A stretch of 64,000 nt of DNA from Paragordius varius (Eukaryota; Animalia; Nematomorpha): NCBI GenBank assembly GCA_964247055.1, contig OZ176050.1, positions 8,060,001 through 8,124,000 of the forward strand, given 5' to 3'. This document shows positions 10,170-54,036 of this stretch, piece after piece. The first letter of the stretch is position 1, and each line of letters starts with the position of its first letter. Under the pieces are notes generated by a model. The model was not told where the DNA came from, searched no databases, and saw only the letters and a list, made by a program, of their open reading frames with translations. Both the position numbers and the translations under genes were made by a program.

Positions 10170-11268
10170 AAATTTTACATATTCAGTAATACATATGATA
10201 TAACTTATTTAAAAAATTTTAAAACTCAAGCGGCTTCTAAAAATTATATAGTTAGCTAAAAATCTATTGAGACATTAAAGTAAAGTTTCATGTTATTAAA
10301 ATAATTTATAATTTTGCAACACAATCTTTTAGTTATGAGTGTCTAGGATGATCTGTGATACTCATCAAAAAATTTAAAGGACAGTAAAAAATATTTATCT
10401 TGCACAAGAGCGGTTTATTATTTAATGCCGATAAAGCTTTTATATCATACTACTTCTAGATATTTATGTTTGAAATGAAAACATGAAAATATAAGTAATT
10501 TGGAGCCAGAAAAAAGCATATTCAGGGCCGCATGCAGCTTGTGATCCCGGTTTTTGGTACGACTAGTCTAGGTCATTTTATTGATTCGGTTCCTTTTATT
10601 CAAGATAAATGGCTATCCAAAGGAAATTCTTCAAGAAAACTTATAATTATTTTGACCTTAATCGTAAATAACTATATACCAACTCCGAAAGATTCTTATT
10701 TTGTTTTTTATAATATTTAACTATTGGTGGTTAGATAATTTTTAATTTGATGTTATGAGACACCAAATTACAATAAGTTTATTATAATTTAAAAGGATAA
10801 ATTTCAAACTTAAAAACTCCTTGGAACAGCTGTTTGATTTCAAATCAGCTTTCAATAAAATGATAATTTATAATGTAAAAATTTATTTATATTAGCCAAA
10901 CCTCCCACATAAAAAACAGTATAAAGCTCGGGGCGAAACGCTATTCAACATCCAACCGTTCTTAATAGGTAGTAAGGGAGTGTTAAAGCATATATGCTAT
11001 TTTTGAAAAAATAAATATGTATGTATAATTTAAATTTTTTACTCAATCGCCGTTTTGCTTGTATTTAGGGCAGTACCAAATAGATTACTGATTTAGAAAA
11101 ATAAAACGTATTTTGCCTTTCAAATATATTTTATAATAATATATATTAACAACTATATAATGAAGCCAAATAATAAATAATTTATAGATAGCCTAATGGC
11201 CGTCAAATATTTTGTTTTAATTTTGATTAATCGCATAGGATGATACATTTTATAATGACTCGTAAGCA

Positions 11269-13069: not shown

Positions 13070-16000
13070 TTAATGAGTAATGGTACGTTGGGTATGCGAT
13101 GCTTTTTCCTACAATACAATTAAATAGATTTATACATAAATATATTTAGTTTTTCTAAAGTTAATGTCAAAAGTTGTTACCATTATTTCAAACCCAACCC
13201 AATTTTTAGTTTTATATTATTTTTATTTAGAATCATATTTGGCCAAAATAACTGAATTTGTTTAAAAAGCCTGACGGGAAAATATATCAATTAAGCCAAC
13301 CATCTTATACTTAATAAAAGAGCTTAAACGATATGTTATTAAAATTGTTTAAAATTTAAAAAACCTCTCCATTTTGGTTAAGCAAAGTGGTGGTAACATT
13401 ACTACCAGTACCCCATGATCGGCGTTCGTGGAATTCCAAATTGTCAGGCTTCCCGTCGTAATAACCAGAAGCATAAATCTAAAGATTAAATATTACATTG
13501 AAATAATCATAAGATTATAAAAATTTATTAATTAGAAATCAATTTTAAAGAGTACATACTCTAATAGTTTTCGTAGGCTTAATGGTAAATTTAGGGAAGG
13601 TGAAAACAACCGAATCTCTATTATCAATGTTTCTACGTATTTGCCATCCATCCAAAACTTGGTCCTATATTTTTGGAAAAATAGATTTTTGAAATTATCA
13701 ATCGTAAAATAACAAGCTATAAATAATATAAATTATATTATATTGAAATAAAGGTTGAAAAATCTAAAATTTTAACTAAGTTAATTTTTCAAAATTTTTA
13801 AACCTTAAGTTTGCTTGTATTTTCCAAGGCAATAAATTGACCCTCAGGGTCTACTTCGGCAATGGTGAGGGGTCCTTTTGAAGTTCGTTGATAGGTGGTT
13901 TTGCTTGAAGATTCTCCTGGGAGGGCTTTGCTAAAATCGCCGCCACCAATGTAATCTCGGGTGCCGATCTGGCTAATGGCTTTACGCACGTGTTTGATCG
14001 ATTCAGGGGATAAGTTCAATCTTAAAAAAATTATATAATTAATCAATTTTGATGAATACACTCTGAAATAATTAAATGTCTATGGAAAATACAATTTTTT
14101 AAAAAAAAGTGCGATAAAAGTCTTTATGAGGACATATTAAATAATACACCAACCTATTTTCTTCACCCTCCAATAAACGACGGTAAGCTGCAATCTCAAG
14201 ATCCAAACGCAATTTGGTGTCCATAAGTTCACGCAATTCAAACAGTTGAGCTGCAATCTTCTCTTGCAATTCTTGCATTTCGAAATCGCGTTGAGCCAAT
14301 TGAGCTTCAAAGTCTGAATTTTCATTGGCTATGGCCCGTTCAAGTTCCATTATACGCTTCTCAAGAGCAGCATTGGCATTGCGCAATTCCACAATCTCGG
14401 TGCTAATTTCGGAGACACGGGATCTGGCTCTTTTGGCATCATCTTTTGCCGATTGCTCCTCAACGTTTTTCTTTTGGGTAATTTCCATAAATTCTTGGAT
14501 CTAGATGTGCCAAAAGAATGTTATGTAATGAATTAATTTTCGAATAATTGATATATATGCGATATTTTAAAATGAATAAAAGTTTATTTTTTTGCAAATT
14601 ATTTAATGAGATATAAATAAATTTAGTTTTTCAATAAACCTTGGCTTTATACCATCCCTCATTATCAGGGTACATCATTTTCGAAATGTTTTCATACTCA
14701 GTGCGGATATCCTTGATGGCCAAAGAAAGTTCGTTTTGGAAGATGCGTCTGAAATCACCGGAATCGTCACGACGTATGCCTTCCATCAATTCTTTTAGAG
14801 TCTAAAATTAAAATCAATCAAATAAATATAAATTAAAATATTTTTATATAAAACATAAAATATGATTGGTTTAGCAATAAACACTAGCCGTGTAACGGGT
14901 TCTTAAGAAGTTATGCATGGAAATGGATTTAGGGAATACACTTTATTTTTTATTATAAGTGTTTTCCAAAAAAATTTTCATAGTATTCTTTACTTAACGG
15001 TTAATTTTTAAATTTTAAGAGACCACCACAAATTAACCAATAAAATGAAAATGAAAAAGCTTACAGCAGAGTGCAATTGTTGTTGGAAATCTAAGTCCTC
15101 TTGCAAACTTTGCAATTTGTTCTCCAAATCAACGCGAATCAAGAGCTCATCCTCATTGTTAATCTTAGCGTTGGCCAATTCGTCCAACAAGCGTTCCAAT
15201 TCCCGTTTATAGCGATCAATATCATCGTTGGCTTGATCCAATTTCTTTTGCAGGTTGGCTAATTCACCATCCTTTTCAGACAACAACACTTCAAGTCTCA
15301 ACAATTTGTCGCGTTCGTTGTGATGGAGACGGGAAATTTCATCGTATCTATTATTATTATAGGCAAAAAAATTTAAAATATTTACAAGTTTTTACTAGTC
15401 TAAATACTCTCTAAAAATTGACACTAAAGTTAACTGTCTAAAAATATATTTATCTATATATAATGTAGATAACTTGTTATCACAACACAGGTTCAATTTT
15501 ATCAATTTAAATTATATGTTTAATATCTAGTTTTATTTTTAGATACATGAAACGATTTCGAAATTTCGCAAAACCAGATGATTAACGTCTAAAATTTGGT
15601 TATACAACTTTATATTAAATACTTTTAAAGCAATTATATAATTATATTTATATTTTATGTAAAAAACTTAGATATTTTTATATATATATATATATATATT
15701 TTCTGAGTAGCTTCAGGCCGAATATAAAAGATATAGTATAATACCTACCAAAAATTTACGTGTTATTAAAATTTGGCTAGCTCTGTAAAGGTAAATGTAC
15801 CTTTATAAAATTTTATTTAATGTATTTTTACATCCAAAAAACGTTAAATGTGATAGTATTCATTTCATGTAAAACAAAAAAATTATAAGCAGTTACCTGT
15901 TTGTTGCATATATAAATGAGCCTTTTTGAATTTCTTCGAAAATGAGTAATAACGAATGAATTGAAATGATGAAAATTAAAAAAAAATATAGTAAAATATA

Positions 16001-19000
16001 TTTTAGAAGCGATTTAACAAAATATATAAAGATTTAAAATATTAAGCAAACATCTTCTCCAATCGCCCCCTCCTGGGCCCCTGATAAATGCAAAATTAAA
16101 ATAATTTGCGCAGAAGAGTTATATAATTATTTTCTTATTCTTATAAATAAAAAAAGTTTTTTCCTTTGCAATAGACAATTTATTTTTTCATATATATGGT
16201 AACATGGAAGCATTTTTTCATATAGCAATCAAGGCCTTAACCTATTCAACTACTTATTTTTCTCTGGCTTTTTTTCAATCAAAATTTTTACCTTTTCTTT
16301 CTTTATAATAATAATAACGCATAAAATTGCATGACAATGCAATAATTTTTTTTCAAACTAATGAGAATTATACATGAGCACAGCATAGGTAATCAAAACC
16401 TGGAATCACATATATGTATGTAAATGGGACAATTATGTTTTAAAGGCAAAAATATAAACAACTACAATACTATATAGGTAGAATTTTCCTTGTGATCAGT
16501 TAGCATTAAAAAAATTGTTTATGAAATCACAGTAATTTCTGAACAAAGGGGGATTGAATTTCACAAGCTCTCAATAAAAATGTTACGTAATTACTTAATT
16601 ATTATATATGTTTGATTTTATAATATTTTTTCACACCATACCTATATTAAAAGAGGGAGATTGCATATATTTTTAATATAAAATTTTATAGGTAAAAAAT
16701 GGTGTTTTAATTATATTATTATATAGGTAATGTGACCTATTTTTAATGCATCAAACAATTAAAGCACATAAAAAGAATTTTTTGTAAGGCTAACAATTTC
16801 ATACATGTCTGAGATAAAATTTAAGAAAATCTCAATTTTAGCGGGTAAAAATTAAATTAATTGTTTTTTAAGTATTTCGATTGATTAAATCAACTAAACC
16901 ATATATATTGGCAACATCGATATTGTATTTATTAAATCATTATTACCTATCTTATATTAATATTACTATGATTAAACACAATATTATGTATGATTAATCA
17001 TAGATTTGGAGCAAACACCTATTTATAATTTTGCGCAAATAATTTTTTATTCTTATTTTCCTCTTATTATACGTTACTAAATAAAATTTATTCGATTCTA
17101 CCTTATATATATATATATAAAATTGCAAATAAAAAGCATATCTGTCCTTGCCAAAATCGCTTGTATATTTGATTCGTTTTATTTTCGCGATAAAAAATTA
17201 TTTTTGCAAATAACAAATTTTATTTTGGCAATATTGATTGACAGAAAAAAAAAGGTTGGGAAAATTTAGCTTACACGAGAAGAATATTTGAGTTATTAGG
17301 ATTAGGAAATCGTATATGACCACAGTCGTTAATATCATAAAATAAAATCGATATTGTGTAGTTACTTTGTAAAAATGGCTAGCTGCCAACTGTAAAAATT
17401 AATTTTTTATACTGTGCGTAGCAGTAAAAATTTGTCGTTTTCTATACTAGTTTATTGTCCAATTAGTATGCGTGTTTTAAAAACTTTTTTATTATTCTAT
17501 TATTCATTTATCGTAAATTTTGATGAAAAAGGTCATTTTTGTTATGGAGACTGGTTAGAGAGGACATTTTAACATTCAAACAAAAAAAAATAAACGTTAA
17601 ATAACAAAATTACGATTTTGGACACGAGATAATCCAAGGTTATAAAAAAAGAAATTTGACTATTATATTAAAACTAACTGTTTTCAAAGCAATTTAAATC
17701 ATTATTTATTATTTTTTATTTCTTAAATATATATAATGAACATAGTTACAAATATTTTGGTTTAATATTGATGGTAAATAAAACAAAGGAAATGGCCTTG
17801 AATATGCATATATGTGCATGATTTATTATTGATAAAATTAAAAAGATAAATTTACCAATAAATGAGGCACTAATAATTTGCCGTCGCAAATATTAATACC
17901 AAAAAATCTACACTATTTTAATTTTTATAAATTATGGTCACAAAAAGTAAAAAATCTATATTTAGTTATTGGTGTATGTCTCGACAAAAAACATAATTGT
18001 TTGCTTAGGTGGTTTGGAGTTATCTTTGCCAAATAGTCTGTTATTTTTAATTGAGAAAAAATCTTATAGGGTTAAATTGATAGGTCAACATTATTACAAA
18101 TCTTAAATTAAACTGTTAATATAGGTAATTTAAAAAATTTAATTCAAACGAAAATTAACATTAAAATAAATTAATAGAATTAGGAAAATAAAACCATATA
18201 AGTCTTACTTTGTACGATATTCATCAATGTCATCCTCCAAACGATTGCAACGGACTTCGAGGCGGGCCTTATCCCTTGAGGTATCATCCAGCTCACGTCT
18301 AGCGTCACGCAATTCACTTTCAAATTGGGCCCGGACCGAACTCACAATGCGAATGAGTTCATTCTTGATGGCAACAATTTCTTCAATAAGTTCACTGTGT
18401 TGCTTTTCAAGTCTACGGACACGTTCAATGTAAGAAGCGAATCGTTCATTCAAATCTTGCAATTCCTTCTTTTCCTTTTCACGGTAAGCTATGGTGGCTT
18501 TGGGACTAGCGGCAAAACTTGCATCGCCAAAACCGGCAGATCCACCTCCTATTCCCGAAGCATAACTGGAAGAACCATAGGAAGCTCCTCCGCCCCCACC
18601 TCCTCCGGCCGTTCGGGTCGTAGTGATCGTTTTCTTAATTATGGTCGAACTTGACATGGGTGAGCCTTTTTCTTCGCTGTTACTACTGTTTATGTTATGA
18701 GCGTAATAATCTACTAGAGGTTTGTCTCCTTCAACAGTGAGTGGTGCAACACTTTTAGCTACAAACGGTGGGGATGAAACTATCGGTGATTTTTTGTTCG
18801 AGTCCTCTTTCTCTGAGGTGTTATTGTTATTATTACTGTGACTAGAGGATGAAACAGAACCGCTTAAACGTTTCTTGATTTGTTGCAAAAATGAGGGCGA
18901 AGATGTGTCTTTTTCGCGTTCAGTCAAATAGGCAGAAGTAGATTTTTGTTCAGAGGGTGGAGTTGATGATTGATGTGTTTCGGCAGATAAATTTTCGTCG

Positions 19001-19781
19001 TTGTTTAAATTATTGTTATTGGCAAAAGCAGTTGTAGTAGTGTAAACGGGAGAAGAAAGATCGTTTATTAATGTAACGTCTCTCCTTTCACCTGTATTTA
19101 TACCATTTCCATTATTTTTGTTTTTGTTGTTTTTTTCGTTATTATTTATATTATTTTCTATATTTGCCTCCTTTTTCGTATTTTGTATTACTTTTTCATC
19201 CTCCTCCTTATTATATTTCTTTGTTTGTTGTTTACTTTCGTGTTCGCTATTTGCGTTAAGGAGTGTAACACTTTGTTTTGTCGCAATCATAGTACCATCC
19301 GCGACAGTGTCACCCCCCAAACGTTTCTTATCGGTTTCTCCGCTGCCTTCCTTTTGAAATAAATCGCCACCGTTGTTTGTGGATGACATTATTATTGTAT
19401 CTTTGGGATTTGGAAACGATTCTTTTTTATTTTTGTTATTATTATAAGTTTTAGCAGCTTTATTAACACTACTATTATTCAAATGATGATTATTATTTGG
19501 AGTTTGTTGTTCACTTGCTGAAATATTATTGCTAATGTTTGCACTGGGTTGTGTAGTTTTCTTATTTTTGTTAATTTGCCTAAGCGGAGTGGTAACTTTC
19601 CCTTCACTTATTAGTTTATCGACTTTTCCGTTAACTTCTGTTTTTTCGTTACTTAGAAAAGTATTTTTGGATTTGTAGCTGTTTGTGGATTGCTTTAATG
19701 TTTTCTACAAATATGATATAAATATTATAAGGGTGAAATATTTAAGTTATAAGAGATATATATATACTATTAACGTACCAT
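13070..19781 (-). CDS. Cytoplasmic intermediate filament protein of protostome type (long coil 1b, lamin-tail domain, no CaaX), with a ~350-aa extra N-terminal segment
   Basis: Exons 19781-19779 (ATG|GT), 19704-18209, 15347-15065, 14801-14640, 14500-14154, 14020-13804, 13664-13560, 13478-13365, 13108-13070; 921 aa. Motifs EKKELQDLNERFASYIERVR, LDLEIAAYRRLLEGEENR, YQRTSKGPLTIAEVDPEGQFIALENTS, SWGTGSNVTTTLLNQNGEEKASHTQRT. No NLS or CaaX box seen. An internal Met at 18657 would give a typical-size 571-aa form. Confidence 0.9.
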
Positions 19782-21599
19782 TTTGATCGATTTTTAATGA
19801 TGGGTAGGGCAATTATATTTATATCAAATTAGATAAAAATATCTTTTAATTATAGGGCTTAGCTAATTTTAACTAAACAGGTATTACAGAAGATATAGTA
19901 TATTTACAAAAGGAGAAATGTTAAAAAAAGTATTTTTCATCCTTTGCCCATTGTTTTAGGTGTTAACTTAGACTTTGACACCTAAATTTTTATAATTTAT
20001 ATATATTTGTATGTAATTATTCATCAAAACAATATCAAATTGTCGCCAGTAAAATTTTGTGATGCACACAAAAAAATTCTTAGAAATTTGGTTTAAATAA
20101 ATAATTTCTTCTTAAGGCATTTTGGCTATCATTCTGCAATTGTTTTTATTATGTAAAAACGTTTTTTTGTCACATACGATTTCATCGTATATTTTATATA
20201 TTTATCCTTCAAAATACTCTTACTTTCTATTTTGTAGATCATTATTTAATAATACATACTTTTTTGTTATTTAAAAAAATTTATTTGCTGAATATTAAAG
20301 AATAAATTAGCCTTCGAAATAACATTACAAAATAAATATTTTAGCCATCACAAAATTTTTTTATCAAGGTAAAATTAGACTTGTGCGAAAAAGTAAAACT
20401 ATAAAATATTTTTTTAATATCCTTTTTAGACGACGAAATTTAATTATATGCCATAAAAAAACAGGTAGCCAATTTACTTTCACCATTAAACGAAAGCCAT
20501 TTTCATATCATTTTCATGAGTAATGTAATAAAAATTTCTCTTTTATATATATAATTAATATTACGTTTGTTATTAAAAGTATCCCAATTTTTTTTGTAAC
20601 CAATATTATAAATTTTTATAAGGATGTCTGAATTTAACAAATATTCATATTGCATTAAATAACCCTTTTTTGTGCCCTTTTTTGAGTTTTTAGCCGTTTT
20701 TATCCCATCTTGTGTAAAATAAACTCTTGTAACTTTTTTAAATAATATCTGCGACATTCAAACAAATGAAAAGCATTTTTAAAATATTAACTAAAATCGG
20801 AAAGGAGAAAAATGATTTTATAAAACATATGTGATAAATATAATTTTTACCAGACCATAAAACATCATTTTTAGAAGTATTTAATGATTTTAAATATTTA
20901 TTAAAAATTATCAAGTTTTCAGCGTCAAGCTGCTTTCGCTCTTATATTAAATTGGGGCCGGGTTTTTTTGGGCTTACTGATGCTTAGCGATGATAGTTGA
21001 ACAAAATATTCAAATTTGTAATATGACTATTTTTAATACTTTCTTTGTGCGCTCTACCGCATAAAAGTTGAATGTATTAAAATGAAATGTTGCTATCTAT
21101 ATCCTTCTGGCTTTTTGTTAGATAAAATTGTCCAAAAATAAAGACAATTCAATAATAGAAAATAAATAAATTTCCCTTAAGTGATACAAATATAGATTAT
21201 GAATAACACTAGTCGACAAATTTGGACATTTTTGAGCACCACCACTCAAACTTTTAAATTATGACTAATTTCAGTGTTTTAAAACCGAATGTGAAAAATT
21301 TATTGATCCCGCCAATCAGAATTTTGAAATATTATAGGTTTTTTAATTTTTCAAAAACAAGAGAAAATCGAGAGAAAATTAAATATAACTTTATAATAAA
21401 ATGTTATTATATTATAAACTTAATATCATTTATTAAAGCGTTTTAAACTCTATCATTTGAATATAAATATGTCATTTAAATATCAGAGAAAATAAATAGT
21501 ACGGACTTAAACGTCAAAATTTAATCTTTTTCTTTCAAGTGAATTTTTAATACGTATAAAAAAATTTTAAAAAATACTAAAAAGGCATTCTATGGTTTA

Positions 21600-22200
21600 A
21601 ACCTTCGGCTTTCAGATAGGCTATATTTTTTTGTTAGTTTTCGTTCTTTCGAGTACTTATTAGGCTTTTTTTCTTGAGTTGGTTTACAAAAAATCCTTTA
21701 TTTATACCTAGTGGATATGCTTTATTTTTTAAAATTATTAGTTGTTTTGTATTTTTAATTTCAGATGGTTGTTGTGTAACCACTTTTAGTAGAATTTACT
21801 ATTATGGGATTGGACCATTTGTATTTACCTAATCTTTTTATTCAATTTAATTGAAGAATTTATCTAACTTTATTCTGTGAATTGGTTAATTTGACATGTC
21901 AATTTGCCTGGATTTTGCTTGCAAGTCTCTTTCTTATCGGGCTTTACGATTACTTATTGTTATCTTTGCCATATCTGGCATAATTGGATCGCTTGGGGGA
22001 TATGCAGAGCTTGTGCAGCCGCCCGGATCTATCACACTATACATAAGCCCCTTTTAGATTTTTAATACTTTGGCTCTTAGCTTGTTTAGTATCTTATCTA
22101 ATGCCTAGAATTTTGTTATTCATGCATGGAATAATTCTTGTATCGACTTGTTCGTTTGAATATTTAAACATATGTACACGAGGAATGATTGTTATTTTTA
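21600..22200 (-). pseudogene. Possible decayed gag-like retroelement fragment
   Basis: One stop-riddled, K/S-rich frame contains V*CDRSGRLHKLC, a degenerate zinc-knuckle-like word; locally higher GC than the flanks. Confidence 0.25.
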
Positions 22201-24929
22201 AATTAAATACAAATTTAAAAATTAAATTTCGGAAAAATCCTATTGGTGGCCTCAATTTTTTTTTTGTTTTGGCCTTTCCATGCCATTAGGTATCAGAAAA
22301 TGCAAAAATAATGGGGTGGTGCAAAACCTTGTGAGCAGTGTAATCTTTATAAACATCCCTGATTTAGAAATCTAAATTTGGCCCCATTTTTATGGCGTCC
22401 TAGGTCTCCGCTTTATTAGTACTAGTTTTGGCCTACATTATATTTTGTAAAATTTTCTATGATGTTTTAACGGAAGAGGCAAACTCACTTAAATATAGAT
22501 TAAACTGTATGAATGATTTGTAGAAATCACTTGCCCTTTTTAAATGCGGTCAATGGAGCCTAAAAGATAGGAATTATAGTGTTTATAACACTGGACAACA
22601 AATTTTAACTTTTTTTAACTGCCATTCTTGTAAATTTAAAATTTATTTCATTAAAGTACATAATTAGTATATCTGAAAAGAAAATTGGTCCTACATGAAA
22701 GAATTTTTTTATATTAGAGTTTATCGATAATTTTTGGCCCCGATTTAACATTAAACTCGAAATTTCATAAATTTAAAGTTTTAGATATGAAGCCATGTAT
22801 TTTATATCATTCGAAAGAGCGCAAAAAACTGCATCTTTTAAATGGTAGTAAGTCAATTAAATCCATCGGATGTAAAAGTTATTTGGATTTAAATGGTCAA
22901 AATTTTCAACCCTTAAATAAGTCAGGAATTTTCACAGACAAACTAATTTTTAAATCATTTAAATTATTTTAATATTATTATTAGGGTTATATTAGTATTT
23001 AATTTAAAAAAAATGTTTGGAAAAGCTTTTGGTTTGCTTTTTTAATAAAAATTATAATTATCATAAATATTTTACCTAGTGGATACTAAAATGCATAGTT
23101 ATAACTGTAAATTTATTACATAATGGCTATAAAAGATCAAAAATACCTTAAACTTTGTTTTTATTTTTAAATTTTCGAAATTATCAGCCTTGTATAGAAA
23201 ATAAATTAATATTGATGAGATGGTAGTTTTTAAAAAACAAAAAACTTAAAAATGGCTGTTTTGAGTAACATAAAAGCAATAAAAAATGTTTTAATCAAAA
23301 AAAACTTTCTTGTGTTATCTTTTTTGGACATTCATCTCCATCTAAACAAAGTTTGAGCTATTTTCATCTATTAGTTTTAAAAATATTATAATTAAAAAAA
23401 ATGCTCTCGCTTCGCGCGTTTGTCGCTCTTTGTGTCCAATATTAACTGTCGATGTAATACATATTAGTATACATTTTATAGAGTTTTTAATACTCTTTCG
23501 AATGATATATTACAAATGGGCATTACTTGTATACTTTCAAAGAAAAACATTTTTTAGTAAAATTTTGATAAAGAGGGCGCATAATCTAAAAAATCAAATT
23601 ATACAAAATTCTTCCAACGAGTTATAATTTTTATTTCAGATTTACTGTTAAAATGATATTAAATATCAAAAAATGCAAAAAACTCGAGTGGAGAAAAAAT
23701 TTGTTGTCTAGTGTAATGCAAATCACACGGTAATGTTTACCGATTCTCAAACTGGACTGTGAGATAAAATTGCAACATTTAGCGCCATATGTCTAAGGTA
23801 CGGACTCTCAAATTTAAAATTTCTCGCCCCTGCACAATTTAAGACCATATACGGTTAAAATATGATAAAATTGTGATCTATTTATTATGTTTAAAAATCA
23901 TGCTATAGCGTCTTAATTAAGAGACCTTAGCTCAAAATTTGGAAAATTCATGACATCTTGCAAACACGAAAATACGCTTAGCTAAAGTATTGATTTTTCA
24001 AATATGATAGATTGTAGGTTGGACATGGAGGATGGAGGATGAAAAATTTTCAACATTTAAATTGCTTCGTTGAAATTTGGATGTAATATGGAATAAAGTT
24101 ACAAACAAATATATTATTAGCATAAAGTTCCCCATTATCACTGATAGGGCATTGTGCTAAAAAATTTATATATATTTAAAACAAGACAACTAGATAATGT
24201 TTGGTAAGTAAATGGTTCAGAAAGCGTGATCGTAGACTTTTCTTCATTTTACGGTCTTATGTTAATGGCAGAATACAATAATGATAGCAAAAAATTTTTT
24301 TAACCCAGATAAAAGCCAACCATAAGCAATCATACAAAGAGTCATGTTAATATTCGCATTTTTTCGCGTCTTACCTGAATGCTAAATATTTTATAAAAAG
24401 GGTTTTAACCATGTATAAAAATTTGTTTTCACCTAATTGACCGGTTTTAAACATCTCCTCGTTATAACAAATATATTAAAAGTCAGTCATTATTATACAA
24501 CGAATGAAAAAATGACCTATAACACTATATTAATTTAGACGGTTTGATGTGATATATAAATGGCCTATCCAAATCACGCAAACGAAGGGGTATTAGATTA
24601 TTGATATTTTACAATGAAAGATATTCCAATTTGAAACAGCGTAGTAAAATAATCCGTACAAATAGCAAATCAGCTTGTAATTAAAATTAACAAAAATACT
24701 GCTTGAAAATTAAATTTGTTCACATTAGATAATGTACATAGTTGCCGAAGTATTATTAATGTTCATAAATATAGATACCGAATAACAAGTTAGTATTTAC
24801 CAAGTGTATTCATAATTTACCCGTTTGAGAGGACGTCAGCGGAAAGTCAGACGATTAATTTTATAGTGACCCATTATATCATCTAATATTAACCTCAAAC
24901 ACCCACAATTTTAGTTCGTCCAAAACTAA

Positions 24930-25730
24930 TGTCTTGCTAATAATCGCGTCATATTTTGTAATTGCGTTACGCAGTGCCATCAGAAAAAAGGATGTCAAGT
25001 TATCGTTTGGAAAAAACATATGGTCAAGAATCCTATCGATCACATGTGAAACTTTGTTTTGGAATATTATGATTACATGTGAAAGAGCGTGCGCATTGGT
25101 AGACCGCACTAATACTAAAGCCATCAAAGAGTTATTGGATGTTCATTCAACTCTAACTCAACGGCAATAGACAGAAGCATCATATGTATAAAAAACAATC
25201 AATAGTCCCAGCAATGGGCGAGGCGAATAAATAAGGTAAATGGGTTGCACACAATTTGAATGATTGTCAAATCAAAAATTGCATGACTAGGGATCCTGCC
25301 TCAACGTAACAAAAAAAATCATTTTTGCATCGAATTGGGACGAGTCATCAGAAATGGCTCAATATCGTGGCTTTCTTCTTCAAATCGGTCCATCAACACC
25401 AATGCCAAATCGCTTAGGCACAAAACCATGTTGTGACTGGTGGTACTAAAGCGGTAAGAACTTTTCCTCGTGAAATTGTTAATACACAACAATATCGCTA
25501 ACAAATACCCAATTAAAACCATGCCTTGATCTAACAACTGTAATAATCCAGAAAACATGGCAAATTGATTTTGTTTGACAATGCTTCGTCTAATGAACAT
25601 ATTGAAAGACATCTTAAAATCGCTTTGGGATATTTTACCGCATTGGCTGAATTCTTCTGACCTGGAGTTATCTGATTAATACGACTTTGCATCAATGGTT
25701 CATACCCTCTTAGAACCGCACATAAATAAT
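24930..25730 (+). pseudogene. Decayed mariner (Tc1/mariner) transposase; boundaries approximate
   Basis: Broken frames give KELLDVHSTLTQRQ, GKWVAHNL, SFLHRIGT..QKW and KLILFDNA, in the order expected for a mariner transposase. Confidence 0.7.
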
Positions 25731-26349
25731 TTTAAAACAATCGGTTTAAAATTACAAGTCGGTTTTAATTTTTGGTTTGTGTTTCAAACAGGTAATTCTG
25801 AAGGCTGATAAATTGTTATTCTATAACTTTCACAACGTTATTAAAAACCGAAAAAGGGAAAAGTAATTTTTCATAATAATACTTTTTGGGTAGGTTCTTA
25901 ATACGAATGCAAATAGAACATTTTAAAAAATATTTTATAATTTAAATTAATTTTGTTCTGTAGACATATATTTTAAAAAGTAAATTTATTTTAAATAATC
26001 ATATCATGGTAAATATTAAGGTAATTATGGTTTGGTATATTTGAAAAACAGTTTTACTAATTAAATGATGGATCTTTTAAAATTTAAAAAATATGTAGTC
26101 CCCCGCCTAAAAACCAATGCAAAAAATAATATTGGAAGTTGATACCAGTATTATGCAAAAAGTATATTCAGATGAAAGGTTAGAATTTAATTCTATATTC
26201 GTGAAATAAGGGACTATAAAATTTTTAAACTTTTAACAACCGTTATGGAGATTTTGTTCCATTGTGTTAAAACTAAAAGTTTTATTGTTCAATGCATCAT
26301 TTTTTATTTTTGTCCAAAAAACTCACATAGGTTTTCAAAATAAAATTAT

Positions 26350-27000
26350 TGATGTTTTATAATAGATATCGTATTGACTGCCTTATCAAAACTTCAAGGT
26401 TATTTCTACTTACGAGATCGAGATGAGAATATACATGTGAAGTTGGTCACAATGATTGGTAAATACAACAAAACAAGACTTGAATTACCTATAACAAAAA
26501 ATTCCCATTTCATTAGATGTTTTCATAAAACTTACTTTTTTGTATAATAAATTTAAGTAATATTATGCAAAGAGATGCCATTTACATGGTTGGAAATCGA
26601 GGGATATCATTCGGCCTTCTATACTGCAAATTTAATACAATAGCGCTTTCCCATAATGTCTGATTACTAGAAATGAAACCAAATACGTGCTATGTCAGAG
26701 GTGTTTCTTTTTTAAACTGATCATCCACATATAAGGAGCAGGGGTAAAACATGAGTTTAAGATATTGCTTGTAAAAACTCAACGTCAGTAGAGGGGAATT
26801 TTAATCTTGACCCAATATTTTAAATAGATCATATTTTGATTGAAATCTGGTATAATACCGTCATCTTATGGCGTTTTGCTTTCCGCCTTTACTTTTCCAA
26901 CCTCTAATTCCGTCAAATTCCACGATTAAATCTCACTTAACTGTGAGTGTTAACCCATGCTCATTATGCGTGACTGATGATTTCACAATAAGGAACTATG
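26350..27000 (-). pseudogene. Possible heavily decayed non-LTR reverse-transcriptase fragment
   Basis: Stop-interrupted frame ELEVGKVKAESKTP*DDGIIPDF resembles the K.PG.DGI..EF motif; an FDKA-like word lies downstream. Confidence 0.3.
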
Positions 27001-27619
27001 AAAAGTGATAAAAGTGGTTCCTATTTAGTTTTAATTTTTAGGCAACCGAATGCAAACTTGGTTACTATTATATCCAATCTGCAATCGGTAGGGCAAACCC
27101 ATCTTGTCTCAATTATGCAAAAACTATAATATTTCTATTATATGATTTTACTTATTTTGATAAATTATATTATAAAATACCTACCTTTGCCTAAGAATTG
27201 TTGGAATATTAATAAATTGTTGCTTTTTATGTCAATAAAATTTATGGGGGGTTTATGATGAATATATTGGTTTAAAAATTATTGATGAGATAAATTTGTT
27301 CTTGTATGTGGTGGAAGAAAAAAGCGATAATATCACAAACAAAACTGGGTTTTAAAGCAGCACCGTTCTAAAAGATCCTATTTATATGTGTGCCTATAAT
27401 TATTGGCTGATATTGTTTTTGTTTAGTCTCTCTCTAAACACATTCCTAAACGTGTGCATACATTCTCCCACACCAATAACTATTGTATATGCGACACATA
27501 GCCTATTTAGTTCTTGCTTTCACAAAATTATTGATTTTATTATCAATAATATGTATGCATGTATACATATATAATAATAAAGGTAATTCTGGTCACGATT
27601 AAAACAAATTTAGCCATTC

Positions 27620-27622
<3 letters not shown>

Positions 27623-27667
<45 letters not shown>
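27623..27667. repeat. (TA)n microsatellite; others at ~43992-44025, ~45617-45646 and ~15678-15698
   Basis: Read directly from the sequence. Confidence 0.95.
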
Positions 27668-27668
<1 letters not shown>

Positions 27669-27928
27669 CATAAGCAATAAAAGGTAAAAAGAAACAACAT
27701 TGGCTTGTTGCGTAATTTGGGCCAAATATATCGATATTACCTGCTTGTAGTTAAAATATATGGAAATCTTAAAAAATTAAAATCTGTTAAATATATCTAC
27801 TATGCATATTAAAATCGTTACATATAGATATGATTAACAAAGTTGCTTCCTACGATTAATGTTGAATTCTAACAAAAAATGTTCGTCATATTGGGGCATA
27901 TTGTTAGAAAAATCTTAAATTCATTTAA

Positions 27929-28506
27929 CAATTGGATATAACACATTCATTTTAGTCCTTTGATTCAAATTGGGGTAGTTAAATACCCCAGGCCTGTTTA
28001 TAATTAAATTTTTTAAAAAATATGGAATTAATCGAAACCATGGCAAAATTTTGCACTTATATAACATTAATAAACCCAAATATATAAAAAAATTTATTCA
28101 AAAATACTTGATATTACTTATTTTAAGCTAAAACCGAAAGGTAAAAATTTAGTCAATTTGACATGCGTGCAATGGTAAAATTGAAAAACAATACAAAATA
28201 AACAGCTTTTTCTATTTCTATCAATGTTAGATGTAATTTAAATCAAAAATTAGCTTTGATTTTACCCTTAAAATCAAATAAAGACGATATTTTGCAAAAT
28301 TTTTGTAAAATAAAAATGGCGGCCAAGTAGTTTGACATGGAGCTTTTTTTTAAAACAAAATTTTATTTAGATATTTTGGCATATTTATATAATATTTATT
28401 AGGATAGAAGCATAAATTTAAATTGGGACCGTTTCCTTCAGTAGGTTTTTAAAAATCCCTACTCAAATTTAGTCTGGGGTATTTGGATGCCCCAATTTGC
28501 AAAGTG
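27929..28506 (-). mobile_element. piggyBac-like MITE, copy 3 (inverted, 578 bp)
   Basis: TTAA on both sides; reverse complement of copy 1 along its length. Confidence 0.75.
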
Positions 28507-30653
28507 TTAATTTGATATATTACTTTAAACCAGATTTAACCAGTATTTATCTTAACATTTTTAGTTCGATTTTTATAGTAAAATGCCATAAGTAACCCTT
28601 ATGAATGTTGGGTAATTTTAAACAAAACCATGTAACATATAATTTATAAATTAAAAAAAATCTAGATAACCTAGAAAGCGAATGATTTCGAATTTCGCCA
28701 AAAAGGATTACGATTGAATTAAAATGCAAGTGCTTATTTTCAAAAAAAATTACTTCACATAAAATTACAAGTTTAGCTTTTATAATGAACGAGGAATTAA
28801 ATTATTTTCATTATTCCACTTAATTAATTTTAGTTTAGATAATATACATTGTAGGCATTGCCGTTGCATATTAATTAATGTTAACTCATACATTGTTTAA
28901 ATATTTTATAGCTATTAAATTTTAATTATCTTCCAATTTTGGTACTAGTATTTGCAACTGCTTTATATAATATAGCCTTTTTTGCAAGATACGTAAAATT
29001 AAAACCTAAATTCTCAAAAATTTGTCATATTAATGAGGATTTTAATTTAATTATTTTATAAAAACAACAAATGTCACTTATGTGATAAATTTAAAATTGT
29101 ATAATGTTTTTGATAAAAGATATCTAATTGGAAGAAAGATAGTATTCAATTTAATATCATTTACCGGGATATAATTTTTAGATTAACCCATTAGTTAACT
29201 AGATTTTATCAAAATAATGATGAGATTATAAAATAATTTGGGTCTAACGCTTTATTATTGGATAAACACAAAAAACTCGATGTGTTAAACAGCTGATAAT
29301 GCCATTTTATTACCGGCTAAAATATCGAAAAGATTCATATATTTACATAAGTCAATTTCAAAATTTCAATAAAAAGTATTTTTGAGGTCCCGATTACCAT
29401 GTCAATAATTATGAATCAATATAAAAAAAATTAACCTTGCCCCCCAAAAAATGTAAAACAATAACAATTTAAAATAAATATATTTAATTGTGGCTCGATA
29501 TTTTTATTATAATTTTGAATATCTCGACAAATTCTCTTTTAAATTTTCGAATTTATCTTTTGAGCTATACAAATCTGCTAAAAACTTATTGCAAACCCTT
29601 ATTAAGTTTAAGCAATGTATAGAATCAGTTATGTATGCACTGTCATTTGATCGCTTATGTGGCGCCTCAAATATTTTTATGAATTTCTATACCATTAAAT
29701 TCTTTAAATTTAGACTTATACTGAGCATAAAATTGACCCAAAAAATGAAAATTGATTCACAAAAAATTCTTTCAGAATATAAAGATTCCGAGATTATCCA
29801 CCAAAGCTTATCCAAGTTCTCTGAAAAAGAAATGCAAACATAACAGTTATTAAAGGTCTTATTTTAACACATTAAATCCATTTTTTGGTTATTTCCTAAC
29901 AAAATATTTTCCTTTGCACGAGACAATAATTTTTTTGTGAAATGCAAAAGCCAAGCTTAGCTCCAAGGACGTTGCTAGAGAGAGACTGTGGAAAAAGGTC
30001 ATTCACTTGGTGGCTAGCCTCTGTGTTTGGGATGAAATGTGTTGTGGATATTAATGAAAAAAATTAATGATGTCTAGCTTTTTAGATACAGCTTTACGTG
30101 TATAATAATCCATATACGATGAAATTTATAGGCCTGTTGTGCTTAACTGCGCTCTTTGAATGCAAAAGATTGTATGTCCATTTAGTAAATTAAGCGCAAT
30201 TTAATCAATATATAATCAATAAATTATAATAGTGAATCGATAAAACAAAGGAAAATAAATCTAAGATGCCAAAAAAATTTGAAATTGTAATGTAAGAAAT
30301 TGATAGGGAAATTATAACATAATCGGCTCAATAAGCTATTTCAAATTTAGTTTTTATAAATTAAGCACGGAGAGCCGATTTCAAATAAATATATATACAT
30401 CAAATAAAACGATGTTTAATGTCAATGAATTACGAACAGCCTTATTTAAAAAACGCTTTGCCCTTTGATCAAAACAAAGTAAACCGTTGTTATGATATCA
30501 TTTTAAATATAGTAAGTATTTTTTTAAGTTTTGCGGATAAATTGTATTACAGCTTAGAAAGTTAAACCTTTACCATAAATTTAAGATCCAATTTTTCTTA
30601 AAAATTATTAAATAAATATTTTCAAAGTTTCTCAATATATTTTTAGAAATAAC

Positions 30654-33600
30654 CTCTTGGTACTGTACATTCTGATGTTCAAACAAAGCTTGCTTATCAG
30701 CGATATTTGCCTTTTGCAATTTAATCATTTTGGTTGGTGAAACTTTTCCACTGTTTACCAGCTTAGGGTTATGAAAGTAATGATATAGGCATGATACATA
30801 GGTAATGATGGACCTTTCGTCCGGTTCAAAATCCATCACATCTAATACCAAAATATATTGAAAATTCAAAATTCAAATTTTTTTACTGTAATAAGGGCTA
30901 ACAGTTATTTATTTAAAAATTAAACAATTAGAACAATTATCACAGGCATAAGTCTTTCTATCAATTTTTAATTATGAATAGGAGTTAATATTTTTTATTT
31001 GTAATTGTTGTAAAATGTTAGATATTTTCCTGTTTACTTAAATTTGTTCATAATTATTACGAGTTCATACCGCCAGAACCTGTTAGATCAGTAATCGGTT
31101 TTCATACAAAACATCTTTACAATAATTATTTTGGAACCAATATCAATAAAATTGAAGTATTAAAAAGTTAAACTAAAAATACGAGTTTCTTTTGGTGCTA
31201 AAGTTAAGCAAAAATGGAATGGTATTATGATATATTTTAGACTTCTGATTTTGAAATTCTAAAAATGTGCAAACGTTATTAGTTACAGCTGAAATTTATA
31301 AATCGGAAAAAACACAAAGTTACCTTCAGGATCTAGTAGCTTATTAATTCCCAAATAAATATCAGCTATTTCAAATGCATCTTTGAGGTTACGCCAAGCA
31401 TCATCAGCTTGATACGATTCATAATCAACCAAATCAGGCCTATTTTTAACATAATAAAGTGAATATACATAGATAGCTTAAATGAGATTTTGTGTCGATA
31501 CTATTTTTTAGTTGTTTGATTTAATAGTGTAGTAAAGCCCTTTCGTCAAGTTGCCCCGATTGTGGGAAATAATACATGGCATAATATCCGAATCCTGACC
31601 CTTTTTTGAGATAAATTGATAATTACGCTATGAATATATTTTTAATTAAATTATATTCTAATAAGGTAAATTAAAGAATGATACCATTTTTGTATTAAAA
31701 TTGTTAAATTTCATTATGTAACATTATAAATGAAAACTATGAGAATTGACTGGAACTGTATTAAAAATTAACCGAAATAAATTTATTTTTAAATGAGCTA
31801 ATAGGTTATTAGGCACTCTAAGTCTCAAAAAGTTCATTATCAAGGAGATACTTATATCGGGTACCCTGTTCATATAAAGTTATGTATTTAATCGCATTTG
31901 TCTCTCTAAAAAATTATCTTAATAAACTATTTTAATATTTAAGCTTGAAATAACAAGAATTACGGTATTAATACAACATTTAGTGCACACATGAAAAATA
32001 TATTACCGCTATAAATTCAATTACTGTCATTTATAAAACATTTACCGCACTATGAATATTTTACGAAATTTACCTGTATGAATGTATCAGCGCTAAAAAT
32101 CCCAATCCATTTCTCCAGCTGTAGGAAAAGTTCGTTATATCAACTCCTTTGTATCTGAACGTGAAAATTTTTTAATGTTTAATTAAGATAATATCAAAGC
32201 CAACATCGAAAACAAATTTAGTAAAGTTATGCTGATTTTGGGGAGGTAGGCTCAAAAACTAATTCAAGTTAGCTGTTCAAAAATTTAAAATTTTTTAAAA
32301 TAAATAAAATAATATTAGTTAAATATATATATATATATATAGTTAGCATTCATGATTATCTATAAAATAGAGTTAAAAAATTTGCTAATTATATCATAGG
32401 GTGATAATAATTATCTAATGGTTAGAATTTTCAATTCCCTAATATTTTGAAATAATATTGTTGGGATAAAAAACTATTTTTCAAAAATATTTAAAACATA
32501 AAAATAAATAGTATACTGATATATATTCAAGTTATAAGATAATATTTACTCCATTTGGTATCGAATAATAGACATTTGTGTTAATTTTATAAAATTAAGT
32601 TGTATAATTCCTAGACTATTATTCTGAAAAGCAATGGAATATTTAAATTCTATCATCATTAAAAACCATACTAATTATTTATTCTATCATTATCTTTAAA
32701 TGTACCTTTTTTGGCTAATTTCATTGATTAACAAATAATTTATTACGAAAAATATTTTTAGATGAATGCTAAAAATTAGTTTCAGGCTATAATTCCTGAA
32801 ACTTCTCTCTCCCTTATTTAGCCAGTGGTTTTCTGTACCCAAAATTGCCAAAAAACTATAAATTATATTAAACCCACAATGATTAAGATGTATTACTTGT
32901 GTGCTTTCAGCCCGCAACCGTTCTGACTTTACTGATTAATATTAATATTCAAATTCAATTCTTCAATTATCTTTTTAATTAAATATATGACAAAAAATAA
33001 AATCCAAATACTAATTACCCAAATGTTTGACGTTGACACCAAATTAATAAGGCATTTTTGGAGAATGCTTTAGCTTCTTGTAACGAATTTTTATCTTTTT
33101 GAAAACCTGACATACTATATCTACGGGATTCTTCCTGAGTCTAATAATATAATACATAATATAAATATAAAAATATATTGATGGACAATCGAATGACATA
33201 TCTTAAATCTATTTTAGCATTATTTCACAATATCTACAATAAATTTTTTAAGGCCCCTATAAAGGAAGTCAGTATAATTAGGGATCCACAAATATCATTT
33301 CAATTTGGCAGCGACGTGTGACAGGGCACAGCTAACATATTTATTAATAATACATATTGAAAATTTGATTAGCATCTTTAACTGATTATTATTTATAAAA
33401 GCGGTGAATTTGTAATAATTGGAAATGTACTATCCAATTTAGGCAATTAAAAAAATATATAATAAAGTACTAAAGTGATTGAAATGTGTTCGATCTGATA
33501 TCGCAAAATTATTGTCCATATAAGTCCCAATATTAAACGGCCATTTCCATCCACGATGTCTTCTGATCCAATGTTTTCCAAATGTACCTAAAAAAAATGT

Positions 33601-35111
33601 TTCCATATTTAACAAAAATAAAAGATATTTTATGAATATACAATTTAATTATTTAATTAATCACTAAATTTTATCCATATAAATATTTATATTATCTTAA
33701 GATAAACTTAAAAATCTACAATCAACTAATTATACATAATCAATTCAATGTTAAATAACTTTGGTATTGATCCCTTTTTAACGTCGTTTCACAAAACAAC
33801 TATGATTATTTTATTTTTATGGCCAACAAAGCCTTTTGCTACTTCCCCATGGTGGCTGGGTTACTTTGGTGAACTAACACCAGAGGCATATTTATATTCT
33901 GCAATACAATATACTTTGCAAGGAGATTTTTTTACAATGGCACTCAAAAGTAAAAACCTTGCCCCAACCTTTTAACCATGTATGCGGAAAATCATGGTAA
34001 AACTTTACTTTTAAAGTTAAAGTAACTATGAATCAATTATTTTTAAGATTAATGATTAAATTAACCCATTTTTCGGTTTTTTAAGCTTTATACAGCACTT
34101 TACAGTTAGAAATATGGCTTATGTGGGATGTATTTTCGTTACTTACGAAAAAAATGTTTAACGCTAAGCTTTTAATGATTTTTGGCATGGCTATGACAGT
34201 TTATGAAACCGTTTTTGTTTAACGATTCCAAAAAAAAGATGATAATTTCCGGTTCCAAAAACGGATTTGGTTTTAATCTTTGCTTTTAATCCTAATTTTG
34301 CTAATTGATAATATAATAAAAGGATTAAAAGCGGATGATTCTTTTATAATTTAATTATATTTACTATGGCCGAATTTATTATTTCACACATTCATCTAAT
34401 AACTCCTACCATCGTTTATAAAATCTACATATAATATTAATGGTATAATTGTATTTATCAAATTTTGTAAAATAAATCTAAGGTCAAAAAAGGTGTACCT
34501 TGTTACTCAAAAATGCTAGACATACATTGACATTTTCGATTTTTTGTACCCGTAATTTTCCAGAATTCGGCTTCCCTAATTCTTCTTCCGACAAGATTTC
34601 AAGCAAATTCCAAAGTAAAATACCATTTTCAAGGTCATGATACAAATCATTTATAGTTAAATCTCTCTATCCGTATTTACAACAAAAAAAACTATAATTA
34701 TATTACTATTTATATATAAAAATTGGTTTCAATTATTAATATCATCATTGTTTTTTTTAATAAAACACCTGTACAATTATTTAAACCAAACATCAAATTA
34801 ACTCGATGGTTTTACAAAAGATGTATTCATTCTTGGTGATTTTTTTCGATTTAAATTAAAAAAATAAGTATCAACAACTTATCGTAATTTAATTTTAATT
34901 ACATATAAAATATAAAATACTTTGCGAAGTTGACTGTTACACCATTTGGTAAATGTTTTTTTCTGTGTATTAGCCATAGCCAACTGCAGATGTTTGAACC
35001 TTTCATCCTGTTCATCTGGTGTTTTTGGGCGTTGTGATAAAAAATCTTTTTTAACGAAATCATCTTCATCAACTAGATTTTCTGTATTTCCAATGCTTTC
35101 CAATTTTGATT
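30654..35111 (-). CDS. Beta/beta-heavy spectrin-like tandem calponin-homology (CH1-CH2) actin-binding domain; first and last exons uncertain
   Basis: Exons 35111-34921, 34666-34499, 33587-33471, 33140-33019, 32154-32074, 31439-31324, 30841-30654, all GT-AG and in phase. Motifs [26 protein letters not shown] (beta-H-like), [61 protein letters not shown]. No spectrin-repeat exons found downstream. Confidence 0.88.
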
Positions 35112-36167
35112 CTATTTTCGTGGCAATAATTATAATAGAAAACAAAATTTAAATGGTTTAAAATTTCTAGTTAATTGATTATATACAAATCATTACAATA
35201 GCTAATATTTAAAGTTTTACAAGATGCTGTTGAAATTTTAGGAAAGATACTGTTTAATTTATCTATAAGCAATAAATTTCTTTATCGAGCAATCTCGGAT
35301 TTTACTTTTTTAATAATGTTAGCCTATTTTAGAGAGGTTGGTCAGAAAATTTGAGTTTGGAGATCTCATCTAAAAATCAAAATTCAATATAAATTTTAGA
35401 TTATGTACCATTATAATGATATTTTTGGAATGAAGTATATATCTTTCGCTAAAATATTATTTAACATAATATGGCTAGGTTTGCGACTTTTTGAATCGGA
35501 GTACCAGAAAAATGAAAATGACTTTTTTATATCACGTAAAGCCTAACCCCATAAATATCCTGACACATACCGGAATATAGATTTTTTTGAGGAGTGTTTG
35601 TGTGCACTGTTTATGATTAATAGATTGTAAGTAAACCACTTATATCAAATTAAGAAATCGTAACTTATCAGGGATAGTTAAAGCTCAAGGCTGGGACAGA
35701 AATACTATAAATGTCCAATGAACTTGAATTAAAAATGAGAACATTGAACACATGGGTAGTTTTTCCTTAGGAATCAGATTATTAATATGAAGAAAATCAA
35801 TAATTTTGTTGTTTAGCCTAAAAACACTGTGTGTATTTTTTTCGGATTTTGGTTGTTGCTTTATGAATAAAAGGTAAAGATGCTATCATAGGGTAAGTTC
35901 AACGATTCTTTTTATATTTAGCTTCTTTAAAAGATTCGGTGAGAATAACTATTCCTAGATATAGTTTTGTTTATTTCAGGTTTTCTGTGGATCGAATCAC
36001 AAATTGTATTGGCACAATAAATCAATCAGAGCGATTTTTAAGCTGATTGGTGATGGGAATCTACAATCAGTAAGCTTTGTGTGGGTAGATTTATGATAAA
36101 TTTTGTGTCAAAAAGCGTTGTTTGGTCCGTTACTAAAATATACGTCAAAGTTTAAAAAATATTATAT

Positions 36168-36389
36168 CAGGGGTTGGAACCCGAGCCCAAATTTGGGAAA
36201 GGTTCCAAAACGGGTTTTAAAATTTTAACTGGTTTCAGTTCTTCAAATTTATTTCGGTTCCAGAACCGATTTTTAAAAATTGGAAGATGTTCCAAAACGG
36301 TTCAAAATGTTCCGGTTCTCATCGTAGAACAACTGTTCCAATCAGATAACCGCAAACAACGGTTCTTGCAGTTCTGGTTCCAAGCCCTG
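36168..36389. mobile_element. MITE with CAGGG ends and internal GAACC/GGTTC repeats; a related ~70-bp relic lies at 7272-7342
   Basis: TIRs CAGGGGTTGGAACC / GGTTCCAAGCCCTG (13 of 14 match); TSD not clear in the AT-repeat flanks. Confidence 0.6.
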
Positions 36390-37100
36390 ATATATTATGT
36401 TCTGAGATTTTATGTAATTATCTAAATTGTTGATAAAAATTGCATAATCGTGGAAAGAATCTAACTCATGTAGCCTTATTGCGAATATATCATCTACGTA
36501 TCTGTACCATACTATAAGCTGAAGCGTGGTTGAATTTTCGTTGCTCGAGATCTTACCATGTCGGTTAGAATCGGTGAAAGGCTAGAACCCATAGGGGTTG
36601 CGCTGTTTGTAATAATTTTTGTTATGCAATAATGTTAAAAGACATATTCTTACTATTTTATCTGGATGTAGTCCTTTTTTCGTTGATTATCAACATTCGA
36701 TCACTTTTGATCTCGAAATTTTGATGAATAGAGATTCAACATCGAAACTTACAAGAGTATTGCTCTAATTTATTTTTTTCTTAACTATTTTGTATGTGGT
36801 GGTTTGTTTGATGTATAAATATTAGACGTTTAAGAAGTTGTTAAAACAAAATATTTGTGGTTGTATTTATATTGTTACATCGGTTAATGGCATCTTTATG
36901 AAGCTTGGGGCACCCTATAATTCGAGGACGTACGGTGAATTTCGCAATACATTATTTCTAACATTGTGCGAGAGGTTGGTCGTTTTACATATTTTTGACA
37001 AATTTAATGATATAGGTGTTGGATTTTTTTGATTGCTGTTTACTCTGTATTATATATGAAATCTTCCATTTTTAAATGTAAAAATTTTTATTTAAAGTAT

Positions 37101-45034: not shown

Positions 45035-54036
<9,002 letters not shown>

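Follow-up and report, generated by a model that had tools for sequence, protein, structure and literature searches.

To our knowledge, every textbook link between actin and intermediate filaments (IFs) uses a separate cross-linker (plectin, dystonin, VAB-10 or fimbrin), and a locus in the horsehair worm Paragordius varius (Nematomorpha) raises the question of whether a filament subunit can carry an actin-binding domain of its own. The locus lies on the minus strand of the window, by which we mean the whole 64,000-nucleotide stretch that was analyzed (C1:8060001-8124000 of a 110.6-Mb assembly); all window positions are relative to its first letter, and its DNA is AT-rich (24-36% GC). An earlier note on this DNA had described exons for a pair of CH domains upstream of an IF exon and had proposed that removal of one long intron between them yields a single frame of CH1-CH2, linker, IF rod and lamin-tail domain. 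The window was searched exon by exon and exon phases were checked arithmetically; AG/GT borders and continuous phase were found in 15/15 exons, including the junction between the CH and IF parts (phase 0 to phase 0). Orthology with a second hairworm, Gordionus, supports the proposed fusion. We think it likely that window 35.1-13.07 kb is a single complex locus, conserved among horsehair worms, and, reading from the sequence, that a fused CH-IF mRNA is probably made in P. varius.

The orthologous locus of Gordionus

Among 1.84 billion representatives, the closest relative of the large IF exon (499 residues) is a Gordionus protein, to which residues 169-499 of the exon are 59% identical (E=1e-70; next best match, 3e-24). 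This relative is a 963-residue product named “intermediate filament protein A-like” that carries both Pfam CH (E=4e-33) and Filament (E=3.8e-56), so that the combination the earlier note had suggested seeking in related species is found in Gordionus. The records come from Gordionus sp. m RMFG-2023 (G. montsenyensis; XP_065313937.1 / CAK9296300.1), and the corresponding 90% cluster contains six products of one locus. The fused products are of 1111 amino acids (aa), with full CH1-CH2, linker, IF rod and tail in the submitters' annotation, and of 963 aa in RefSeq (two XP accessions). Alongside these, the submitters' annotation gives IF-only products of 727 aa, with a six-codon alternative first exon, and 720 aa, starting at an internal methionine, and CH-only products of 379 aa, ending one codon past the donor, and 349 aa. 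The submitters' annotation used RNA-seq hints via BRAKER1, BRAKER2 and TSEBRA. Such a set fits the reservation, also made in the earlier note, that the fusion may be only one isoform of a locus whose IF part has its own start. In the Gordionus large exon (55158-56102 of the locus sequence, L001), 15 codons are absent from the 1111- and 727-aa products and present in the 963- and 720-aa products, pointing to an optional in-frame intron of ~45 nucleotides.

Every resolved intron of the Gordionus gene matches the window in position and phase (1, 0, 0, 0, 2, 2, 1, junction 0, 2, 0, 0, then 0, 0), all introns but one being resolved. The Gordionus junction intron is of phase 0, spans 25,751 nucleotides (OX940784.2:33110479-33136229, minus strand) and runs from AAA|GTATAA to CTATAG|AAAAAC, the bar marking the exon border. 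In the window, the phase-0 donor CAA GAG|GTTATT after 30654, the phase-0 acceptor TTGTAG|AAA before 19704 and the distance of 10,949 nucleotides between them (30653-19705) are as the earlier note had given them. The donors of both species fall in the same column of the protein alignment, and the acceptors are alike (TAG|AAAAC). The short upstream exon ATG|GTACGT at 19781-19779, which had been noted as a possible separate start for the IF, is present and is mirrored in Gordionus by a candidate mini-exon, ATGCAG|GTAACA, 77 nucleotides upstream of the acceptor; the annotated alternative first exon of Gordionus (MQLGQQ) lies ~730 nucleotides upstream of the large-exon acceptor. The two loci therefore have in common the order of domains (CH1-CH2, low-complexity linker, IF head, rod and lamin-type tail), the exon-intron structure and a very long phase-0 junction intron, whereas they differ in the length of that intron (25.7 kb in Gordionus, 10.9 kb in the window) and in the linker, which is poorly conserved.

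The junction donor may look weak, an objection that we reject given that GTT donors are common in the gene in both species. They number 5/14 in the window gene (GTTATT, GTTTAT, GTTGGT, GTTTAA and GTTTTT) and 5/13 in the Gordionus ortholog, and the GTT exon borders of the window gene are fixed by the ortholog (window 13365-30654; L001 13262-60785). Most eukaryotic introns have a purine at position +3; the frequent T at this position makes hairworm splice-site rules look unusual, and such donors may mislead gene finders.

Anatomy of the CH and IF parts

A complete tandem CH1-CH2 actin-binding domain is spread over seven minus-strand exons (35127-30654), which are stop-free and collinear with residues 113-365 of the ortholog (Table 1). 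The true acceptor of the first of them probably lies at 35112/35111; its phase, 1, is that of Gordionus intron 1. Between the species, the CH exons differ at a proportion of 0.23 of nonsynonymous sites (pN) and ~0.87 of synonymous sites (pS), the latter being saturated, which argues that the module has been kept functional across a deep divergence; this comparison places the CH exons under purifying selection. In the ortholog, Pfam CH is matched in two stretches (E=5.1e-47), and the orthologous CH1-CH2 matches the F-actin-bound domain of beta-III spectrin (6anu) at E=1.5e-74, covering residues 47-282 of the 284 in the chain. By these matches the module is a spectrin-superfamily tandem-CH actin-binding domain, CH1 followed by CH2, and is predicted to bind actin.

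The large IF exon opens at its phase-0 acceptor and remains open for 498 codons. Residues 1-340 are of low complexity and rich in Asn, Ser, Lys and Thr, so that the low-complexity run reported before the IF head stands at ~340 codons by composition, and residues 341-409 form a Gly/Ser-rich head. The first in-frame methionine is codon 106. Stops occur in the surrounding DNA at ~7.5% per codon, which gives a chance of ~3e-4 for 105 open codons and ~3e-12 for 340; with 105 open, methionine-less codons at its beginning, the exon must take its start codon from an exon further upstream. There are two candidate sources, the ATG|GTACGT mini-exon 74 nucleotides upstream and the CH exons 10,949 nucleotides upstream.

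Against the Pfam Filament profile (PF00038), the window exons match positions 1-90 (E=1.9e-17), 60-141 (E=4.3e-5) and 204-313 (E=3.8e-21), and the ortholog covers positions 1-313 in a single stretch (E=5.8e-56), with 354 residues spanning the 313 positions. Judged from this alignment, the rod is of the IF type with a long, lamin-type coil 1B, the six extra heptads being present. The ortholog tail is 40-51% identical (E=1e-41 to 1e-26) to the tails of IFs that bear a Pfam LTD (for example P0052, LTD E=1.7e-12); the direct LTD match is weak (E=0.068) in one window exon and absent from the Gordionus fusion protein. There is no C-terminal CaaX box and no basic nuclear-localization cluster was seen in the exon at 14020-13804, and the IF is for these reasons read as cytoplasmic and not as a nuclear lamin. 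Only two other IF loci were found in the genome, at C1:12147395-12153328 (plus strand) and C4:3703031-3707151 (minus strand), with no CH exons nearby; presumably one of the pair encodes the lamin, and the other may supply an assembly partner. The open frame holding the start of the rod is 132 and 232 aa at these loci as against 499 aa at the window locus.

Table 1. Exons and other features of the CH-IF locus in the window. P0168 is the Gordionus fusion protein, used as tblastn query on the window exons.
Feature	Position	Strand	Content and matches
CH exon a	34921..35127	-	Conserved acidic N-terminal segment and start of CH1; tblastn to P0168 residues 57-129, 45% identity; donor AAA|GTATTT
CH exon b	34499..34666	-	Mid CH1; Pfam CH E=7.6e-6; 68% identity to P0168; phase 0/0
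CH exon c	33471..33587	-	End of CH1; Pfam CH E=0.0023; 90% identity to P0168; phase 0/0
CH exon d	33019..33140	-	Connector between CH1 and CH2, and beginning of CH2; P0168 residues 225-266 at 48% identity; out-phase 2, as in Gordionus
CH exon e	32074..32154	-	CH2; 74% identity to P0168 residues 267-293; phase 2/2
CH exon f	31324..31439	-	CH2; Pfam CH E=0.03; 67% identity to P0168; out-phase 1, as in Gordionus
CH exon g	30654..30841	-	End of CH2 and ~31 residues; ends at phase-0 donor GAG|GTTATT, aligned to the column of Gordionus donor AAA|GTATAA
Predicted junction sequence	C1:8090654|8079704 (window 30654|19704)	-	...CAGTACCAAGAG|AAAACATTAAAG...
Junction interval	19705..30653	-	10,949 nucleotides; intron of the putative long isoform, upstream region of the putative short isoform
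Candidate ATG-only first coding exon of an IF-only isoform	19779..19781	-	AAAATG|GTACGT, followed by a 74-nucleotide intron
Large IF exon	18209..19704	-	1,496 nucleotides; ~340-codon linker, IF head, coil 1A and start of coil 1B; Pfam Filament E=1.9e-17 from residue 410
IF exon 2	15065..15347	-	Coil 1B (long, lamin-type); 92% identity to P0168; Pfam Filament
IF exon 3	14640..14801	-	Linker L12 and start of coil 2; donor GTTTAT; 85% identity to P0168
IF exon 4	14154..14500	-	Coil 2 to end of rod; donor GTTGGT; Pfam Filament E=3.8e-21; 86% identity to P0168
IF exon 5	13804..14020	-	Tail and start of lamin-tail-type domain; donor GTTTAA; 81% identity to P0168; weak Pfam LTD E=0.068
IF exon 6	13560..13664	-	Lamin-tail-type domain
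IF exon 7	13365..13478	-	Lamin-tail-type domain; donor GTTTTT
IF exon 8	13070..13108	-	Last 12 codons and stop; ends ...RTITH, no CaaX box; 75% identity to P0168 C-terminus

One locus or two neighbouring genes

The same exons can be read as two separate neighbouring genes, one for a CH-only protein of ~350-400 aa that ends 27 codons past 30654 and the other for a long-headed IF that begins in the ATG mini-exon, with the Gordionus fusions being annotation chimeras or rare, functionless read-through (conjoined) transcripts. That mini-exon lies 74 nucleotides upstream of the acceptor, the frame past the CH donor does stay open for 27 codons if unspliced (stop at 30572-30570), the annotations of the Gordionus locus themselves include IF-only products (727 and 720 aa) and CH-only ones (379 and 349 aa), neighbouring genes are sometimes merged by gene predictors, and word-index protein searches gave no junction transcript from a further species. 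We nevertheless consider a pair of genes unlikely. In Gordionus the parts are joined over a distance of 25.7 kb by each of two independent pipelines, which is rare without spliced evidence and more so when separate start and stop exons are on offer, and the donor and acceptor sit at homologous positions, both in phase 0, in both species despite saturated synonymous divergence. The C-terminus that a CH-only protein would have is unconserved, with 27 codons of read-through in the window and one in Gordionus, and no conserved alternative terminal exon after CH2 was found in either species by blastn or tblastn. The interval (19705-30653) shares with the Gordionus locus no conserved DNA by blastn and no conserved minus-strand piece of open reading frame by tblastn, and no Pfam domain was found in its larger open reading frames scanned on both strands; the adjacency of the two parts on the same strand has been retained though nothing else in the interval is conserved.

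It could also be supposed that the CH exons are the decaying relic of a truncated gene of the beta-spectrin family, giving no product, and that only the IF gene is functional. No spectrin repeats follow the CH exons and their start exon was not found, as this reading would have it; all seven CH exons are open with intact splice sites, however, their protein identity to Gordionus is 47-90%, and their intron positions and phases are conserved. We regard a relic as highly improbable, and pseudogene status of the CH exons was rejected on the grounds that the exons are open and properly spliced and that pN is 0.23 as against a saturated pS.

Several points weigh against a fused protein at a single locus, which we prefer. 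The 5' start exon or exons of the CH part were not found upstream of 35127, and we infer the splicing of 30654 to 19704 in P. varius through orthology and not from RNA. Word-index protein searches with the 499-aa exon, the 1111-aa fusion and the 379-aa CH-only product returned no third species with the fusion and no assembled junction transcript; the best other matches were generic IFs at <=53% identity and beta-spectrins at <=55%. The RefSeq model of 963 aa begins inside CH1, and TSEBRA retains a transcript if most of its introns are supported, so that the 25.7-kb Gordionus junction intron itself might be unsupported. With a plausible start of its own for the IF and a possible read-through end for the CH part, the fused form could be rare, and a large N-terminal addition to the IF head might hinder assembly.

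If the fused protein is nonetheless made, as we think probable, an upstream promoter would give rise to a long isoform in which the seven CH exons are joined to the large IF exon by removal of the 10.9-kb phase-0 intron. Its product would comprise at least 1,253 residues, with the actin-binding domain followed by a disordered linker of ~340 residues, the IF head, the long-1B rod and the lamin-type tail. A short IF-only product of 921 aa would arise, by way of the ATG-only mini-exon, from an internal promoter immediately 5' of the large exon. We infer that the rod of the long form lets it assemble together with the short form, probably also with a partner IF, and that the long form binds actin; filaments would thus bear F-actin-binding domains on flexible tethers and contact actin directly, and the ratio of the two promoters or isoforms would set the number (density) of anchors per filament. 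Since public RNA-seq of Gordionus exists and junction coordinates are defined in two species, the fusion is directly testable.

A spectrin-type actin-binding domain built into the IF subunit would, if real, represent a new solution to cytoskeletal integration. It would also provide a natural experiment on the N-terminal cargo that an IF head tolerates and a clear case of a new architecture arising through exon capture in a little-studied phylum. The standard name “intermediate filament protein A-like” would in that case conceal the fusion, which is an issue of annotation.

Relatives, origin and genomic surroundings

The nearest ESM Atlas clusters to the window IF are those of nematode MUA-6-like IFs, which we take as a lead only. 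IFs of the nematode IFA / MUA-6 type have in common with it a rod with a long, lamin-type coil 1B, an LTD-like tail and the absence of a CaaX box, whereas the N-terminus preceding the rod is ~410 residues in the window IF as against ~30-150 in typical relatives of the large exon, and would optionally carry an actin-binding domain. IFA/MUA-6-type proteins of C. elegans form the epidermal attachments through which the force of the muscles reaches the cuticle, a role that suggests where the hairworm protein might be looked for. Outside the Gordionus cluster, no protein with both CH and Filament was found among the matches listed, with Pfam domains seen for all matches of the 1111-aa fusion and for four matches of the large exon, and the ESM Atlas holds no cluster with CH and Filament among clusters of >=50 members. 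Full-text literature searches returned no description of a CH-IF protein, nor of a CH domain or fusion in the Gordionus protein. The architecture thus appears to be one of known domains in an order not described before, its Gordionus sequence being public but named solely as an IF protein. Another IF with an unexpected accessory domain is that of the bdelloid rotifer Adineta vaga (P0015, 790 aa), in which a C-terminal C2 domain (E=1.1e-21) replaces the lamin-type tail (Filament E=2e-60).

In function, the closest comparison is with the plakins (plectin, BPAG1/dystonin and VAB-10A), which in other animals perform, as separate proteins, the same job of coupling F-actin to IFs through an N-terminal spectrin-superfamily tandem-CH domain. 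Plakins bind IFs non-covalently by plakin-repeat or linker domains and are not filament subunits, whereas the actin-binding domain encoded in the window would belong to the IF subunit itself. In the Gordionus ortholog, Pfam recognizes CH and Filament and nothing else; plakin domain, spectrin repeats and plectin repeats are all absent. Plakin loci employ alternative promoters and first exons that yield isoforms with or without the actin-binding domain, and the window locus, with its two putative promoters, would be like them in this. Elsewhere in the P. varius genome, CH exons (C3:9.891 Mb) are followed 35 kb downstream on the same strand by a GAR domain (C3:9.927 Mb; whole stretch C3:9891014-9926977), which suggests a separate candidate spectraplakin; a search of the genome for plectin repeats, which had no positive control, gave no match.

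In beta-spectrins, spectrin repeats come after the actin-binding domain, 17 of them in the conventional form and about 30 in the beta-heavy form. With these proteins, both conventional and beta-heavy (nematode SMA-1 and fly Karst), the window gene shares the tandem-CH domain, but it is without spectrin repeats, SH3 or PH domain. Beta-spectrin domains from many phyla show 50-55% identity to the tandem-CH domain of the window gene, and solved beta-spectrin actin-binding domains are the best structural relatives of the orthologous CH domain; on these likenesses the domain is of the beta-spectrin type. To the earlier note the spectrin-like gene had looked incomplete or odd; an incomplete spectrin gene is not upheld, as the ordinary beta-spectrin of the genome sits on another contig (C6), where CH exons precede an extended array of spectrin repeats. 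No spectrin repeat was found after CH2 in the interval 19705-30653, in agreement with the same note, either by Pfam Spectrin, which has no match in the window, or by tblastn with three beta-heavy spectrin fragments, and the presence of the C6 gene together with this absence argues that the window module is not a mis-assembled spectrin gene. The window CH domain and the C6 beta-spectrin gene have two intron positions in common.

In a maximum-likelihood tree, the CH domain falls outside a strongly supported clade of conventional beta-spectrins and beside nematode SH3-bearing (beta-heavy) spectrins, on a long branch with support of 90/46; a placement with the conventional beta-spectrins is not rejected by the approximately unbiased (AU) test (p=0.197). 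The three beta-heavy fragments matched only the CH exons by tblastn, in the window as well as in the Gordionus locus. The long spectrin-repeat cluster at C1:3.34 Mb, which lacks CH exons, probably represents alpha-spectrin, and a whole-genome beta-heavy query found no spectrin body besides this gene and that on C6. Nematomorpha is a phylum known for massive gene loss. It is conceivable and attractive, though improbable in our view, that the head of a beta-heavy-type spectrin outlived the loss of its giant gene in the hairworm lineage through capture by a downstream IFA-type gene. The self-anchoring IF so formed would be the first known filament subunit to act as its own actin cross-linker and would assume some of the duties of plakins and of apical beta-heavy spectrin.

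Transposon-derived sequence occurs around the locus. Upstream of the CH exons, in the place where the missing first CH exon should be, are two minus-strand stretches (38989-39276 and 36345-36581), comprising a relic of a hAT transposase dimerization domain (E=9.2e-5) and a stretch with a YVDD-like reverse-transcriptase motif that has no Pfam match to reverse transcriptase. Directly downstream of the IF gene is a gene for dynactin subunit 5 (p25; 9602-10208, minus strand; Pfam DCTN5 E=6.9e-45). The window also contains a non-LTR retrotransposon with an intact open reading frame of 977 aa (45863-48793, minus strand) that encodes an endonuclease (E=7.6e-8) and a reverse transcriptase (E=3.3e-39), and in Gordionus, intron 7 of the CH-IF gene harbours a 39%-identical copy of this element (L001 26586-27829).

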